This document shows, in pieces, positions 1,194 to 34,536 of a DNA stretch of 57,868 bases. The notes under the pieces are model-generated. The model had not been told where the DNA came from, did no database searches, and saw nothing but the letters and a program-made list of their open reading frames with translations. The stretch spans positions 1-57,868 of the forward strand of contig MU626389.1 of NCBI GenBank assembly GCA_025603075.1. The letters run 5' to 3'. Source of the stretch: Neoconidiobolus thromboides FSU 785. Lineage: Eukaryota; Fungi; Entomophthoromycota. Numbering within the stretch: the first letter of the stretch is position 1; the number at the start of each line of letters is the position of its first letter. Made by a program: the position numbers and the translations under genes.

Positions 1194-2639
1194 ATGGAAG
1201 ATAAAGTTAATAATACAGAGTCAAAAACTAGTAAAGAAGCAGATGAGATTGTAAATGGACATGAAACAAAAGCTATAACACAAGAAGAGGTGAATGAAAA
1301 TGAAAAAAATGAAAAAAATGAAACTGAAATAAAAGATACAATTGAAAAAGATACAATTGAAAAAGATACAGAAAGTAATTAAATATTTATAATTAAAAAA
1401 ATCAATGTTTAAAACAATAATAAAGAAAACTCAACTGAAGGGTTAATAAAAGGTAGTTCCGAAATAAAAATATATACCAAAAAGGATCAATTAAAACTAG
1501 AAGAAATTGAAACTAATAACGAAGGTAATCTTCATTTATTCCCCCAGATAATAAATAAACATTAATCAATATTATTTGATTCAATAGAACTCGATCTAGC
1601 TAGTAAAATAATACAAAACTATGACATAATGATCAACAATCCATTATTTGATGTATCTTTTCAACAGAAATTAAAAAAAATGCGAGCATTAAGATCGACG
1701 AAATTAACTTCACTTTTAGATAAAGCATTAGAAAAATGTTTATTGAGTTTCAAGTAAGTATAAATCTATTTTATTGAAAGAGCTTATGAGAAGTTTTATG
1801 TATTAGTGGGACAGTATATAAAATAAACTCATTGACTTGTATCTATTTATTTTTAGTTATAAGAGAGTAGCTGAGGCCTTCCCAGAATTAGCCAAAAAGG
1901 AAGGGGAAATTTTAAAAAATGCATATCAACAAGCAGTTAATGTTTGGAAATCGGGATGTAAGGTAAAAAGAGGTTATTATCAATGATTTAGTTTTAATGA
2001 ACTTAACATATTTTTTATATTAAATAATAGGAGGATTTTCAAAGAATTATTGAAAAATATCAATTGATTAATAAGTTGAATGAATTTGATTATGAAATTC
2101 AAAAAGAAGTTATTAAAAGAAAATTTCATAGTGAGGTTTTAAATAACACTCAAGAAAATTCAAGGTAAATTCACTAAAAATTAAGTCTATTTTTTTAAAT
2201 AGAACACTACAAATTGAGCATTGATGATATTGATATTATAGTCTTGAAGATTTATGTTCTATTACTCCCAATCAATTACTTGAAGCTAAAAAAATAAAAT
2301 TAATGAAATTGGAATTAAATCAATTAAAACTGGAAAGGAAAAAAGTAAGTTTATATTATATTTAGTAATAATAGAACAAAACATAATACAATATAATATA
2401 ATAATATAATATATTATAGATGGAGTTTTATTCTATTTCGTTTTATTTATTTTCATATTTAGATAGAAGAAGAAAATCAAACGCTATATAATTCAATAGA
2501 ATTTAAAAATCAAAGTGTGAAACAAATTATGGAGGATTCAATGGAAGTTATGACGGATGTTAATAAAGTAAATCTATTAATTATAATAAATTTATTAATA
2601 TTAATTTTATAGGTATTTATGTTTCAAAAAAATCATTGA
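1194..2639 (+). CDS. Multi-exon coiled-coil protein, probably Nnf1/PMF1-like kinetochore (MIND complex) subunit with an acidic low-complexity N-terminus
   Basis: GT-AG-joined exons give ...KLTSLLDKALEKCLLSF..YKRVAEAFPELAKKEGEILKNAYQQAVNVWKSGC..EDFQRIIEKYQLINKLNEFD..., which resembles the Nnf1 pattern. The N-terminus has short tandem repeats (ENEKNEKNE; IKDTIEKDTIEKDT). The family call is from memory only. Confidence 0.5.
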
Positions 2640-2993
2640 ATGAAAAGATAATAAAATAAATAGGAAATAATGAGTATATTATTAAATAACTAGTGTTATT
2701 ATTTATGTATCTATTTTAATGAAAAACGGTGTTGATAAAACTTCCATACTTTTTTATTAATATTAATATTTTGATTTTTTTCTTTAACTACTAATTTTAT
2801 GTATTAAATATTTAATTGCAAAGTAATTTTTGATTTTTGATTTTTTCAACCAAAAATTTTCATTAAAAAAACGACTTTAATTAACACTTTAAAAACATCT
2901 AATAAGAAATCTTGTTTTTATTTTGAAATTCTTTATCTTTTTGTGACGAATTTTCTAATCAATTTTATTTCTGACTATTCAAAAATAATCATT

Positions 2994-5900
2994 ATGGACA
3001 GAGAACAATATATAGATGAAGAAATAGAGTTAACAGATCAAGAAGAATCGAATCTACCTTCCACTTTCAAAGAATATGAATTTGTAATTGGAATATTAAA
3101 CGATATTATAAATATAAAAGTGAATAATTTTGAAGAAAGAATAATAAAGAATAAACTAGATGAAGTTATTAAAATAGTAAGTATTAATTAATATATAATA
3201 TATGATATAGTATAATAAATATAAAAAAACAAATATAAAATTCCTTGCTAACTCTATTATTTTAGCTTGATCAATACCAAACATTTCCTAATTTGTTAGA
3301 TCCTCATTTAAAATTATTAGTTGATAAAGTGTTATTCTATTTACGAAGTTCAATTCAAGAGATGAACTTAATACCAATAACATCAATTGAAGATATTGAA
3401 AATTATGAATTCAAATTTCAATTACATGATTCTTTATTTTTGTTTTTATATCATTTAACTAAAATTCGAGGTTATAAAACTATTAGTAAGTTGTTGTTTT
3501 TCAATTTAATAAATAGAGTGTTAGATATGTTAAAGAAAGAGATACTAATTCTATTTTTTATTCTTTTTAGTTCATTTATTTACCCATGAAACAATTGATT
3601 TAGAAGTGAATTTTTATTATTTTATCAAGAGAAAACAAATAAAATCCCATTTATTACCTTGGCAAAGTGAATATATACTATTGTTATGGTTATCATTAAT
3701 ATTTATGATGCCATTTGACTTAAAAAAATTGGACTCGGGTTATAGTAAACAATTGGGTTATGAGGTAAATTAAAATAATTATTAACTATTGTTATTATAA
3801 ATGAAAAATCAATTATTTTTTATATTTAGTCTTTAATTGATCATGTAATTTTTATATGTAAAGGATTATTGTCAGTTAATGGCAAATGTATGGAAAGTGG
3901 TAGTCGATTATTAGCTCAATTAGTTATTAGGTAATTATTATATAATAATAAAAATAAATAATAATAGCAAAATTAATGGTGTAAAAAATAACTCTATTTT
4001 TTTATATAGACAAGATTGTATTACTCATTATCTACCCGAATTTTTAGAATGGAGTTATAGTTCATTACAAAAAAGTGAAGAACTATTTCTTGTAAGGTTT
4101 ATTAATTAATATTAGTTTAAATACATTTATCAATCTATTAATATATTTTTATAGTGGATAGGATTAATTACTAGTTTAGTGAATATATTAAAATTAGGAC
4201 AAAGGGAAGAATTAATTACATATATTAGTTCATTTGAATCTTATTTACAGTTATTTGATATGAAACAATTTTGGACTAAAAATGGTAATTTACGACAATT
4301 AAAAATTAAATATTCTCAACAATTGGGATTATTATGTTTAAAACCAATTGTAGCTAGTTGGAGGTATAAAAGAGGTAAGGAGAAAGATTAATTATAATAA
4401 TAGAGTATTTAATTGACGATTATGAATCTATTGTAAACTGTAGACTAATTAACAATATACCTTTTTTAATAAAAATAGGTTTTCGTACCTTGGAACAAAA
4501 TTTACATGGAAAAATAGAGGTTGATGATGATCAAAAATATTATCCAGAAAATAAAAAGAATGAAACTGAGAAAAATGAATTTGAAGTACCAACAATAATT
4601 GAAAATATTTTAGAAAATTTATTTGATGGTTTAAAAGATAAAGTAAGTTTGATATTAGTGTATTAAAATAAACCAAAACTCAATTGTTTTTACTTTATAA
4701 AAGGAAGTAGCTTGTCGATGGTCCAGTGCTAAAGGAATTGGAAGGATTGCTCAACGTTTACCAAAATCTTTTGGTGAAGATATAGTTTTATATTTATTAA
4801 ATCAATATAAAGAAAATGTATACAATTATGAAAATGAAGCTCCAAATTTATCTAATGTAGATGAGAATATTTGGCATGGTTTATCTTATTCGATTGCTGA
4901 ATTAGTACGTCGAGGTTTAATACCAAAACATTTAGTTGGTCCATGTTTAAAAGCAACATTATTAGTATGTTTATTTTTTAAAGTTCTTTTTATTTAAGAA
5001 TTAAAATAAACTAACGAATATTGTTTTTATTCAGGCTTTACAATTAGATATAAGAAGGGGTACTCATTCAGTTGGTAGTAATGTACGTGATGCAGCATGT
5101 TATGTAATATGGTGCTTTTCTAGAGCTTATTTGAAAGAAGATTTTTTACCCTTTGTAAACTCATTATCAAAAAGATTAGTTGTTATGGCTGTATTAGATA
5201 GAGAATCAAATGTAAGAAGAGCTAGTTCAGCAGCATTTCAGGAATTTGTTGGTAGAGTAGTAAGTGTTTTATAATATTTGATTAAAGATTAAGGATGATT
5301 AATTGTTTTGTTTCAATAGCATATCTTTCCAAATGGTAATGAATTATTGGATATTATTGATTATTATTCCATAGCTAATATAAGAAATTCGTTTTTAATT
5401 GCTAGTTCAAAAGTGACAAAGTAACAATTAGTATTATTTTTATATAAAATTTATAATTTTTTATTTTCATTTTTATAAAAATAGGTATTCTCATTATAAA
5501 GAAGCTTTATTTGAACATATGATTCAAATCAATTCATTACACTGGGATATCAATGTTAGAAGATTAACTTCTATTGCAGTTTATAATATATTGCCTTTTA
5601 TCGAAAAGGAAGCTATTTATAATTCTATTAATTTTTTAGTAAATTGTTATTCATTTATATTTCATTTTATTAAATTAATACTTATCTATAGCTTTTACAA
5701 ACAAGAAAATCGGAGCTTTGGGCTATTCACGGTTCCTTATTAACCTTAAGTAATTTATGTCTAGCCTTATCTAAAATGTCTAATTTCAATCTCTCATCTG
5801 AAAATCAATTATTATTTGATGAATATGATTTCAAATTAACCTTCCAAATGATACCTCAAGTTTTAATAAGATTTATAAACAATGGCTTACCAACTTTAGG

Positions 5901-31228: not shown

Positions 31229-31336
31229 ATATGGGGCTGTTTTTTTTTAGTTTCATTATTTTTCCATCTTTTAAGCGCTATTTAAGTGGAAAAATTGTCA
31301 GTAAAATTCTTAAATACAAAAATACATCCCCATATA
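31229..31336 (+). mobile_element. MITE family A copy
   Basis: ATATGGGGCTGTTTT...TTAAGCGCTATTTAAGTGGAAAAATTGTCAGTAAAATTCTT...AAAATACATCCCCATATA. Confidence 0.85.
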
Positions 31337-31446
31337 TCAAAAACCTTTTACTATAAGATCTACCATATAATTGAATTTATTTAAAGTATTAAAATCAGTA
31401 AAATAGATTTATTGTATTTTATTTAAACATCTTACTATAAAACAAC

Positions 31447-31547
31447 ATATGGGGGATGTTTTTTTCCATTACTTTTTCCATTTTTTTTAAAGCGCTATTT
31501 AAGTGAGAAGATTGTTACTAAAATTCTTTAAAAAAAGTCCCCTATAT
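31447..31547 (+). mobile_element. MITE family A copy
   Basis: ATATGGGGGATGTTTT...AAGCGCTATTTAAGTGAGAAGATTGTTACTAAAATTCTT...GTCCCCTATA. Confidence 0.85.
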
Positions 31548-31749
31548 TTTATCTTTTAGATTTCATGAAAATAACTACACTTCTTTATTAATTGAGGTAT
31601 AAGTCGAAAAAAGCAAAATGTTATTACTTAAAATACCAATGGAGAGAAAGACTAAAACCATAGAGGAAAATGCTTCAGCTATATAATCTACTGGCTTATA
31701 AATTAGTTTGTAGATAGCTTCAGCGAACTGAAGTAGAAATGCTAAGAAC

Positions 31750-31855
31750 ATAGGGATGTATTGTTGTATTTAATAATTTTCCTAACAATTTTTCCGCTCA
31801 AATGGGGCCTAAAAAACGGAAAAAACAATGAATCCAAAAAAAATACCCCCATATA
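31750..31855 (-). mobile_element. MITE family A copy inserted in the GPCR pseudogene
   Basis: Reverse-orientation match to the consensus. Removing it with one TA rejoins the frame (..HSVS-I-FLAFLL..). One TSD copy reads TG on the minus strand. Confidence 0.8.
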
Positions 31856-31923
31856 GATACTGAATGCATGATTAATCCACAATATAGCTTGATTTTCGCT
31901 GATCTATAGGTATTAAGAACCAC

Positions 31924-32029
31924 TATACGGGGATGTATTTTTGTATTTAAGAGCTTTACTAACAATTTTTCCACTTAAATAGCGCTTAAAGGATGGAAAA
32001 GTAATAAAGTCAAAAAAACATCCCCATAT
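31924..32029 (-). mobile_element. MITE family A copy inserted in the GPCR pseudogene
   Basis: Reverse-orientation match, TA on both sides. Removing it with one TA rejoins the frame (..SGQED-I-VVLNTYR..). Confidence 0.85.
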
Positions 32030-34536
32030 CTTCCTGTCCGCTCAACTCTTCTTGCTCAACTAATCAAAAAGCTTGATTTACTTTATCTATTAATTTGAAA
32101 GAGTATATTGCAGATACAATTAAAGGCGCAATTGAACTTGTAGTACTACAAATAAAAGCTACATTAGATAAAGTGAAATATGGCACTACTAATAAACATG
32201 TTATTTTTGAATCGCCTGGAATCATATACTTTAGCCCTGAACTAGCGAGCAATAAACTCATAACAAAAAACAATTCATAAGTAAAAGTAGAGGCATATAA
32301 TTTCTTAACTTAGGTCTGATAATAAAAGCATATATATCTAAAGCTAAGAAGGTGCCTAAGCTAAACTTTGAGAAATAAACCTTAAAATTGATAAATCCAA
32401 TAGTTTAACAAGCAGTAGCATCTTCAATGATGTTTTTTTAGCGATGACTCCATACGCAATCCTAAAAGTATAGCCAATACTAAATAGGTATTCCAGCAAC
32501 CCAATAATGCCCAATGAAACAACACCCCTTTTATTTTTGATTTCTAGAGCAAAAAAAATTAGTAGGGTATTTTAACTAATGTTGTCATAGAAAATATTGA
32601 AAATATATAAAACGCATAGATCGCCATTCCTTTAAAAGAATCAAAGGCTGGTATATAGCATTCGACTTTTAATTTTATAGCTCCTTCCTTTTTAATGTTT
32701 TTCAAGGTTACATAAACATTAATTGCCTTATTTTATTAGATATAATTGATTTGTATTAATTGTTGTTTAAGATATTGAATAAACTGGAATAACATAGCAT
32801 GTATTTTTATTTTTATAACATTAGTGTTATAGCCTTTTCTTTCCTCAGCACATAAAAAAGTTTCAATAGAGGCTGTATGTATGTTATAATTTTATTAACT
32901 GTACTAAGATTACTTTGTATGTGCTTAATCAATTCGATTTATCAATTAAATTAATGTGTTTTTCATCCATAATTTACTATTAATTAAGCTTGAAGCTGTT
33001 ATTTTGAGGAGCTGGCCACAATCAAATGAACAAAATGACTTATGGTAATATTTATTCAATAACTAGCTATTTCCCCTTATTTTTATATTTTGTAACCGTA
33101 TAAGTACTCGATTTAGTCATGTTGACTTTCAGCTAGCCTTTTTTTTCTACCTTTTTGGCTACTAGTTCTCCTAATATTTATGCCTTCTATAGTTTTAAAT
33201 ATAGAATATTAAAACTATTATTTACTATCGCTAATGAAAATGAAATAAAAATACAGTTTAATGATAAAGTTGGTGACTTTGATTATTTTTAAGAAATGTA
33301 AGTTAATAATTTTATCATTCTTTTGTGTAAAGGTAAAACATCAAATATGAAAAGGTCATTTATTAAACACCAATACTCTTTAGGTTCCTTTAAATCAATC
33401 TAACTATATAAAAATCAAAGATCGAGTTAAGTTGTGAAAGAATTGACATGTATTGCGTAGAGATATATGACAACTAAAAAGCAGTTATTAAATTATTCTA
33501 CACCTTAGACTTTTTTATAATCAAAAGGCTATTAAGTATTGGCCTTGGTTTCTCACCTTAAATAAGATTAGTGTTTTTTGTTAAATTGCCTTTTTAGTAT
33601 TGTAATTGACGACAGATGGGTTGAAGGTAACAGTAAGAACATTTAGTGATTTAAACATCAATTGACCAAGATATAAAAATAAGTTGGGACCACTGCTTAT
33701 TCTATTGAAAGCTATTAACTTAGTTACTCGTTTAGGTATTTGGTATTACATAAAGTGCTTAGCATGACTAGCAAACTTAAAGCCTTCGATATAATTTTTG
33801 AACATTATCAAGTTTTATTTGTATGGCTTAGAAGAATCTAGTATGATATAAAAGTATATCATAAACCTAATAAAAGTATTGGCTGGATTTTTTATAGGAA
33901 TCAACCGCTTGGTTGGGGATCTAGCCCTATTTTTATAGCCATGATATGTGTAACGCTTTACTGAAATAAAATAACATGTTTCATTTTGTAGTTGTAATCT
34001 ATTAAATTTACCTGAGATCTCCTATATTGACTCTTCTACTGTGATTCATTTTTCTCATTTTTTATTATTTATTTTTTATTTTTTATTTTTTATTTATTGT
34101 TTTTTGTTTTTTATCTCAAGACTTTATATTGAATTTTATATAATCATAAAACGTATTCCTTTAACTTGTATCCATAATTGTTATTGTGGTTTAATATAAT
34201 ATAACTCATTTATTGATATTAAAGTTAATAACTATAATATATAAAATCAAAATCGATTTCATTGTTTAATATGAAAACATATTGTTAGTATCGATAATTA
34301 TGTTTCAAAGATACTTTTGAATCATTTTAATAAGCTACTAAATATAATATAATAGGCCCTTAATTTTTTGATTAATAAACAAAGTGAATTTTAGTAACAA
34401 ACTCAATGCTAGTTGAATTGATTTTGATATAAAACAAAATCGCGTATTTTAACAAAAAGATGATGAAATATTCTTGAAATGGAAAGCTTTTAAAAAAGTA
34501 TTTAAAGTTGATAATAGCTATTATATTTCAATAAAG

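Follow-up and report, generated by a model that had tools for sequence, protein, structure and literature searches.

Introduction

Rhodopsin-family G-protein-coupled receptors (GPCRs) with an ERY motif have been described in chytrids and Blastocladiomycota, and none in Dikarya (Krishnan et al., 2012; PMC3251606). Rhodopsin-like GPCRs have also been found in diverse fungi, in a proteome sample that includes Conidiobolus coronatus (eLife 2025; PMC12716839), and 125 putative GPCRs of C. coronatus have been annotated, mainly as class A rhodopsin-like (J Fungi 2025; PMC12387763). Here we describe a locus on the first 57,868 nucleotides (nt) of contig MU626389.1 of Neoconidiobolus thromboides FSU 785 (assembly GCA_025603075.1). 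This whole stretch is referred to as the 57.9-kb window. Judged from its sequence, the locus is very probably the dead remnant of a rhodopsin-family (class A-like) GPCR gene, a solitary pseudogene interrupted by two miniature inverted-repeat transposable elements (MITEs). An earlier note, made from the letters of this DNA, had proposed such a pseudogene and had called DRY-type receptors untypical of Dikarya, which agrees with Krishnan et al.

The same genome holds a large family of intact paralogues, through which the relic can be compared with described systems. Like the class A GPCRs of early-diverging fungi, this family has seven transmembrane helices (TM1 to TM7) and helix 8, an Asn in TM1, an acidic residue at position 2.50, the pair of Cys3.25 and a Cys in the second extracellular loop (ECL2), ERY or ERL at the end of TM3, Tyr 5.58, and an absence from Dikarya. 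The differences are that NS...HT stands for NPxxY and CM(F/L) for CWxP in the N. thromboides family, and that the locus described here is dead. As in C. coronatus, the receptors of this entomophthoralean insect pathogen have undergone a large lineage-specific expansion. Receptor expansion is not new; it has been described for C. coronatus (PMC12387763). The birth-and-death chemoreceptor families of animals (nematode Srx/Srv/Srsx, rotifer 7tm_1 and vertebrate olfactory receptors) are also alike in their intronless or compact genes of about 300 amino acids (aa), their tandem arrays and their share of about 20% pseudogenes. In contrast to them, the present family belongs to a fungus and has a chemosensory role that is presumed, and the similarity is at the level of the superfamily.

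Results

A broken receptor gene on the minus strand

The relic consists of consecutive pieces on the minus strand, in all three reading frames, which are listed with their window positions in Table 1. Each piece was mapped separately onto a 301-position family profile built from 44 intact paralogues, and the pieces together span 241 of the 301 columns. The peptides read, in order, MAIYAFYIFSIFSM; SLGIIGLLEYLFSIGYTF; ATAC*TIGFINF; SLGTFLALDIYAFIIRP; DSKITC; APLIVSAIYSFKLI; IVVLNTYRSAKIKLYCGLIMHSVS; and FLAFLLQFAEAIYKL...LLFSTY. All of them lie between 32627 and 31575 in the order in which the earlier note had quoted them. Its TM1-like peptide is present too, and what it missed is that TM1 is split by a frameshift, with the second half, NTLLIFFALEIKNK, in another frame.

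Two pieces fall outside the scoring. Piece 1 is too short and was placed by its position and its likeness to family N-termini such as MFTFTPFYIATICVTS, while piece 4b is not scorable because the third intracellular loop (ICL3) varies in length among family members. The remaining pieces carry recognizable landmarks. In the alignment, the Cys of piece 3a corresponds to family C78 and rhodopsin C110, and the ECL2 Cys of piece 4 to family C149 and rhodopsin C187. The tripeptide DIY of piece 3b (GAT ATA TAT, 32330-32338) aligns to the ERL/ERY of the family, and thence to E134-R135-Y136 of rhodopsin, with Ile replacing Arg. The earlier suggestion that DIY is a decayed DRY is hereby supported.

The window has about 27% G+C, and other frames of the region likewise encode hydrophobic peptides. 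These features, together with the failure of the pieces to match Pfam (see below), would suit a chance origin, in which Phe/Ile/Leu/Tyr-rich translations of AT-rich DNA mimic membrane helices. We consider the probability of this explanation to be practically negligible. The pieces match the family profile collinearly, scoring 21-27 bits as single domains and 18-22 bits in a whole-window run, whereas the best domain in 300 dinucleotide-preserving shuffles of the region reached 8.1 bits. A six-frame search of the 57.9-kb window with the family profile found no match of 5 bits or more outside this locus. In the profile search of the species' own genome, the relic was matched at 31545-31757 (E 1.1e-7) and 32252-32443 (E 7.2e-5). 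Meanwhile, both conserved Cys residues, the Gly after the Cys-Gln (CQ) motif, the LAL before DIY and the Asn in TM7 are retained. The shuffle and whole-window controls refute a chance origin.

The intact receptor family in the same genome

Piece 6 weakly matched four continuous open reading frames (ORFs; 301-306 aa) elsewhere in the genome, which provided the route to the family; piece 4, searched against the same genome, matched only itself. A four-ORF profile (alignment A1) was then searched against the genome, and 44 intact members were fetched (alignment A2, L001-L044). The search gave 80 matches, comprising about 52 intact full-length ORFs (293-370 aa) and at least 14 loci with internal stops or fragments, so about one family locus in five is decayed. 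The intact members lie mostly in tandem clusters (contigs C17, C98, C60, C142, C12, C237 and C93), and all 44 that we fetched are uninterrupted, intronless ORFs of about 300 codons. The intact paralogues that the earlier note had proposed to look for therefore exist, and its picture of an expanded, fast-turnover family holds.

The first four ORFs share a Cys before TM3, LALERL or LAIERY, the ECL2 Cys, CYxKL in TM5, CMF in TM6 and NSxLxLxxHT in TM7. Across the 44 members, the consensus of the E/DRY motif is LAxERL/Y, with the Arg in at least 90% and the Glu in at least 80% of members. C78 and C149, the Cys3.25-ECL2 Cys pair, are found in at least 90%, and the relic keeps both. TM6 reads Y-x-x-C-M-(F/L), with no Trp or Pro, and TM7 reads N-S-x-L-x-L-x-L-H-T-G-I. 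We also notice that His284 is invariant in alignment A2. A more distant subfamily, formed by L041-L044 (G000:C75, C245, C58 and C552, where G000 denotes the N. thromboides FSU 785 genome) and the C237 cluster, has proteins of 322-370 aa, a longer ICL3 and a different TM7/helix 8 (LLLHNKVY...), and it matches the same profile with E values of 1e-9 to 1e-22.

The family is truly class A, because four lines of evidence agree: the Pfam 7tm_1 domain, a profile match to rhodopsin, a modeled fold of seven TM helices with helix 8, and structural matches confined to class A. At E <= 0.01, 20 of the 44 proteins match Pfam 7tm_1 (PF00001; best 1.4e-12), and none of the 44 matches another GPCR family of Pfam. 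About half of the members are too weak against 7tm_1 (E > 0.01), and L003, for which alone the score was read, lies below the gathering threshold. Against the PDB, the 44-sequence profile matched bovine rhodopsin (E 1.5e-11), followed by PAR2, invertebrate and cone opsins, AT2R and MT1; every receptor among the matches listed is class A. In the alignment to rhodopsin, the TM1 Asn corresponds to N55, the TM2 Glu to D83 (position 2.50), Cys-Gln falls at C110, ERL/ERY at E134-R135-Y136, the ECL2 Cys at C187 and the invariant TM5 Tyr at Y223. Glu for Asp at 2.50 is a conservative exchange. This hidden Markov model alignment ends before TM6.

An AlphaFold2 model of the L003 protein, computed from the family alignment, shows seven TM helices, an ECL2 hairpin and helix 8, with a mean local confidence (pLDDT) of 92.6 and a predicted template modeling score (pTM) of 0.88. 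In a Foldseek search of the PDB with this model, the top 50 matches are all class A, with probability 1.00 and TM-scores of 0.52-0.68. A protein-language-model search placed rotifer and nematode 7tm_1/Srx clusters nearest, after the query protein's own Zoopagomycota cluster. The 7tm_1 and AlphaFold checks that had been proposed for the reconstructed relic thus turned out positive on the intact paralogues. The proposal of a rhodopsin-like GPCR holds, since the relic is a collinear, broken match to a same-genome family that carries 7tm_1, rhodopsin and class A fold support.

In public databases, a homologue search with an intact paralogue returned solely the species' own annotated model, K502DRAFT_218370, a 'hypothetical protein' of N. 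thromboides FSU 785. The public gene model P0001, also named 'hypothetical protein', has 284 aa and is 93% identical to the 304-aa continuous ORF L003:1091-2002 (minus strand); the difference probably stems from a spurious intron, or another start, in the annotation. The genome has three intron-split G-alpha loci (G000:C36:20117-21170, C33:140648-141744 and C1:381165-382197), compared with roughly 52 intact class A-like receptors.

Lesions that break the gene

Unlike all the intact paralogues fetched, the relic has no continuous ORF. We regard it as a pseudogene because three frameshifts, an in-frame TAA, an in-frame TGA and two MITE insertions break its reading frame. The TAA takes the place of the Gln codon of the CQ motif, which is invariant in the four ORFs of alignment A1 and the majority form among the 44 paralogues of alignment A2. 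A single nucleotide change, CAA to TAA, accounts for it. Three codons past the terminal TAG (31577-31575) lies a second stop, which the profile alignment likewise reads through.

The conserved residues have decayed as well. Of ten columns conserved in at least 90% of members, the relic retains five, the losses being D38G, R102I, Y180S, Y227H and H281Y. The Arg of the E/DRY motif (R102) and Tyr 5.58 are among the residues lost. At the 80% level it retains 8 of 17 columns, compared with a minimum of 9 and a median of 16 in intact members.

Several observations weigh against this interpretation. A Pfam search of the individual pieces gave no match to any family, and for this reason the class A assignment of the relic rests on its intact paralogues. 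CWxP in TM6 and NPxxY in TM7 are missing from the consensus of the 44-member alignment; these motifs are typical of class A, not universal. Over its pieces, the relic is about 25-35% identical to any paralogue, and with such low identity some of the lost residues could reflect an old divergent lineage rather than decay. Finally, every frameshift coincides with a homopolymer run, a common site of assembly errors, and the true copy may be slightly more intact than the assembly suggests. Errors of this kind cannot account for the two in-frame stops or the two MITEs.

If the frameshifts at the A4, A7 and T6 runs were sequencing errors, and if the MITEs and perhaps other breaks were spliced out as introns, the gene might still be functional. 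One end of MITE 1 (...GTATAG) does resemble a splice acceptor, and a 33-nt stretch, GTTAAA...CTAG, resembles a small intron. We find a working gene very improbable all the same, since the boundaries of the MITEs lack a GT donor and splicing elsewhere would lose the register at MITE 2 (profile positions 230|231, see below), while the TAA falls exactly on a conserved Gln codon, the TGA interrupts ICL3, and the E/DRY Arg and Tyr 5.58 are gone. The candidate short introns GTTAAA...CTAG (32590-32558) and GTTAAAC...TTTAG were rejected: the first stretch encodes NTLLIFFALE, the conserved TM1 motif of the family, and the 44 paralogues examined are intronless. A ciliate-type code reading TAA as Gln, prompted by the stop on the conserved Gln, was also rejected, because the Hsp70 gene of the window is a 620-aa ORF in the standard code, the paralogues are open in that code and the organism is a fungus. 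From these lesions in its sequence, we conclude that the relic is no longer able to make a receptor.

Table 1. The receptor relic, its lesions and the local MITEs, in window positions.
Feature	Position	Strand	Basis or remark
Whole relic, intronless class A-like GPCR gene, ~300 codons	31575-32627	minus	piecewise collinear with the 44-paralogue profile
Start ATG; stop TAG	32627-32625; 31577-31575	minus	bounds of the relic
Piece 1: start codon and N-terminal half of TM1 (MAIYAFYIFSIFSMTTL)	32577-32627	minus	translation
Piece 2: remaining TM1 (NTLLIFFALEIKNK, N1.50), first intracellular loop, TM2 (GLLEY, Glu at 2.50), start of first extracellular loop (ECL1)	32419-32571	minus	profile 22-69 (hmmsearch/hmmalign)
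Piece 3a: ECL1 up to the conserved Cys (KNIIEDATAC)	32408-32437	minus	profile 69-77
Piece 3b: TM3 with LAL-DIY, second intracellular loop, start of TM4	32261-32404	minus	profile 80-124
Piece 4: TM4, ECL2 with the conserved Cys (DSKITC), TM5	32067-32270	minus	profile 126-189
Piece 4b: ICL3 segment LVEQEELSGQED, reaching MITE 1	32028-32063	minus	translation
Piece 5: end of ICL3 and start of TM6 (IVVLNTYRSAKIKLYCGLIMHSVS)	31855-31926	minus	residues 5-23 = profile 211-229, last residue = 230
Piece 6: TM6, third extracellular loop, TM7 (ILSNNILLFSTYTSIN), start of helix 8	31578-31751	minus	profile 231-288, E 2e-9
Frameshift 1, A4 run inside TM1	32570-32573	minus	pieces 1 and 2 differ in frame, 5 nt (GTTAA) between
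Frameshift 2, A7 run	32433-32439	minus	pieces 2 and 3a overlap in different frames
Frameshift 3, T6 run inside TM4	32265-32270	minus	pieces 3b and 4 differ in frame
In-frame TAA, at the usual Gln of the CQ motif	32405-32407	minus	profile alignment, X opposite q of 'lgCqilGf'
In-frame TGA in ICL3	32064-32066	minus	translation and profile alignment
TAG stop, possibly premature	31575-31577	minus	profile alignment continues ~11 positions beyond, to 31545
MITE 1 with both flanking 4-mers (ATAC...ATAT, plus strand)	31925-32029	plus	95.2% to consensus
MITE 2 with both flanking 4-mers (ACAT...ATAT), in TM6 just before the 'CMF' position	31748-31854	plus	83.2% to consensus (divergence overstated, see text), gap-free over 107 nt
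MITE 3, degraded, ~22 nt past the relic stop	31447-31553	minus, opposite orientation	88.7% to consensus, with indels
MITE 4, downstream of the relic	31229-31336	minus, opposite orientation	93.4% to consensus

Two MITEs inserted into a once-continuous coding sequence

MITE 1 sits in ICL3 and MITE 2 in TM6. The consensus of the element is 107 nt long including its ATAT flanks (ATATGGGGATGT...ACATCCCCATAT), with the inverted ends GGGGATGT...ACATCCCC. We fixed these ends from an alignment of 24 copies, of which 20 are genomic copies taken with 30-nt flanks and four are local. ATAT flanks are present in most copies, and beyond them the sequence varies from copy to copy; insertion has thus duplicated either TA (2 bp) or ATAT (4 bp). 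The two possibilities are indistinguishable, because they predict an identical empty site. The TA duplication claimed by the earlier note is compatible with these flanks and is one of the two equivalent readings.

The element is short and non-coding, with terminal inverted repeats, a flanking duplication and a high copy number, as MITEs are. A first-look count gave 1,740-3,449 candidates in the 24.6-Mb genome. It is comparable to Stowaway-like (Tc1/mariner-type) MITEs in length (about 105-107 bp), in its lack of coding sequence, in its inverted ends and TA-containing flanks, in its thousands of candidate copies, and in that the host sequence is recovered when an element is excised together with one copy of its flank. 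The difference here is the conserved ATAT on both sides, which makes a 4-bp duplication equally possible. We take the TA/ATAT flank to hint at a Tc1/mariner-like origin.

Removing the elements in silico is a genuine test of their boundaries, because one in three deletion lengths keeps the frame and one register alone fits the profile. For MITE 1, excision of 101 nt (32026-31926, the core with one flank copy) rejoins GQED to IVVLN in frame, with the junction ...GGA CAG GAA GAT A|TA GTG GTT... This junction can be checked for frame only, and not for register, since ICL3 is variable in length in the family. For MITE 2, excision of 103 nt (31853-31751 or the equivalent register) joins HSVS to (M/I)FLAF. 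In separate searches, the upstream piece extends as far as position 230 of the profile, and the downstream piece takes up the alignment at 231. The spacing of the empty site, KLY followed by nine residues and MF, is that of intact members (KLYTILAIYTTCMF). The predicted empty-site junctions are ...GAAGATATAGTGG... and ...GTATCTAT(G/A)TTCTTAGC..., respectively.

Excision with one flank copy restores the frame and, for MITE 2, the exact register, which shows that the MITEs are simple cut-and-paste-type insertions into a once-continuous coding sequence. That MITE removal restores the frame had been stated in the earlier note with the right peptides, but its '106 nt + TA' should read 101 nt and 103 nt. 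The miscount arose because its element coordinates already contain both flank copies. Its Ile (ATA) at the second junction is the weaker reading: the retained codon is better read as ATG, whose Met aligns with the common Met of the TM6 'CMF'.

Order of events

Of the 13 copies that the MITE profile detects in the 57.9-kb window, four are crowded into 0.8 kb (31229-32029). Either a MITE killed the gene or a MITE landed in a dead gene, and the earlier wording, that the copy was knocked out or colonised by MITEs, is true as this alternative. Among the other genomic copies, the best reach 85-88% identity to MITE 2 and 90-94% to MITE 1, and MITE 2 is probably the older insertion. The dating of MITEs against stops proposed earlier yields this rough order between the two elements, and does not rank them against the point lesions.

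One possible, though doubtful, course of events is that a MITE insertion, most likely that of MITE 2 in TM6, was the primary knock-out, with stops and frameshifts following later. MITE 2 interrupts a transmembrane helix and has diverged furthest among the four copies at the locus (83% to the consensus, a divergence overstated by a consensus built from relatives of MITE 1; at most 88% to other copies). It may belong to a subfamily other than that of the consensus, in which case its divergence is inflated, and the point lesions are not datable. The crowding of four MITEs in 0.8 kb, compared with 13 in the 57.9-kb window, would be explained just as well if they had accumulated in DNA that was already neutral. 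A second family pseudogene, L065 (G000:C60:104900-106500), likewise has its coding sequence interrupted by two MITEs, one again in ICL3, which would favour an early insertion, but L065 has additional stops itself.

In L065, the MITEs lie at L065:678-780 and 937-1042, just after the ECL2 Cys and in ICL3, and the stops lie in ICL3. Its intact neighbours in the family, L001 and L008, share 61-81% identity with it. MITE copies also flank the intact members L002, L003, L007 and L035.

Because two independent members (the present relic and G000:C60:104900-106500) each hold two copies in the coding sequence, one may ask whether the ATAT-flanked MITE actively brings about the death of receptor genes, with MITE insertion rather than point mutation as a main driver of the turnover of class A-like GPCRs in Entomophthoromycotina. 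We regard this broader proposal as unlikely.

Genomic setting

The window, contig C132 in our labels, belongs to a genome of 24.6 Mb in 799 contigs with roughly 27% G+C. Its large ORFs encode Hsp70 (620 aa), tubulin cofactor D, Vps18, UDPGP and an ABC-F protein. Rfam and tRNA scans across the window gave no matches. In the profile search of the genome, C132 has no further family member besides the relic.

Discussion

The copy in the window has long been dead and belongs to a receptor family that evolves by birth and death. The locus represents one casualty of such turnover within a large set of receptors, whose intact members presumably sense extracellular ligands and signal through the three G-alpha proteins. 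A role in sensing the host or the environment, as put forward in the earlier note, may be among their functions.

On its own, the relic carries little weight, since it adds a further dead copy to receptors whose expansion in Conidiobolus-type insect pathogens was already known. The relic is useful as a worked example in which host coding sequence fixes the boundaries of MITEs to the nucleotide. For annotation, our findings mean that the locus should be entered as a pseudogene and that the intact paralogues now named 'hypothetical protein' should be entered as rhodopsin-family GPCRs. With about one locus in five decayed, the relic and its relatives provide a data point on the speed at which this receptor family turns over.

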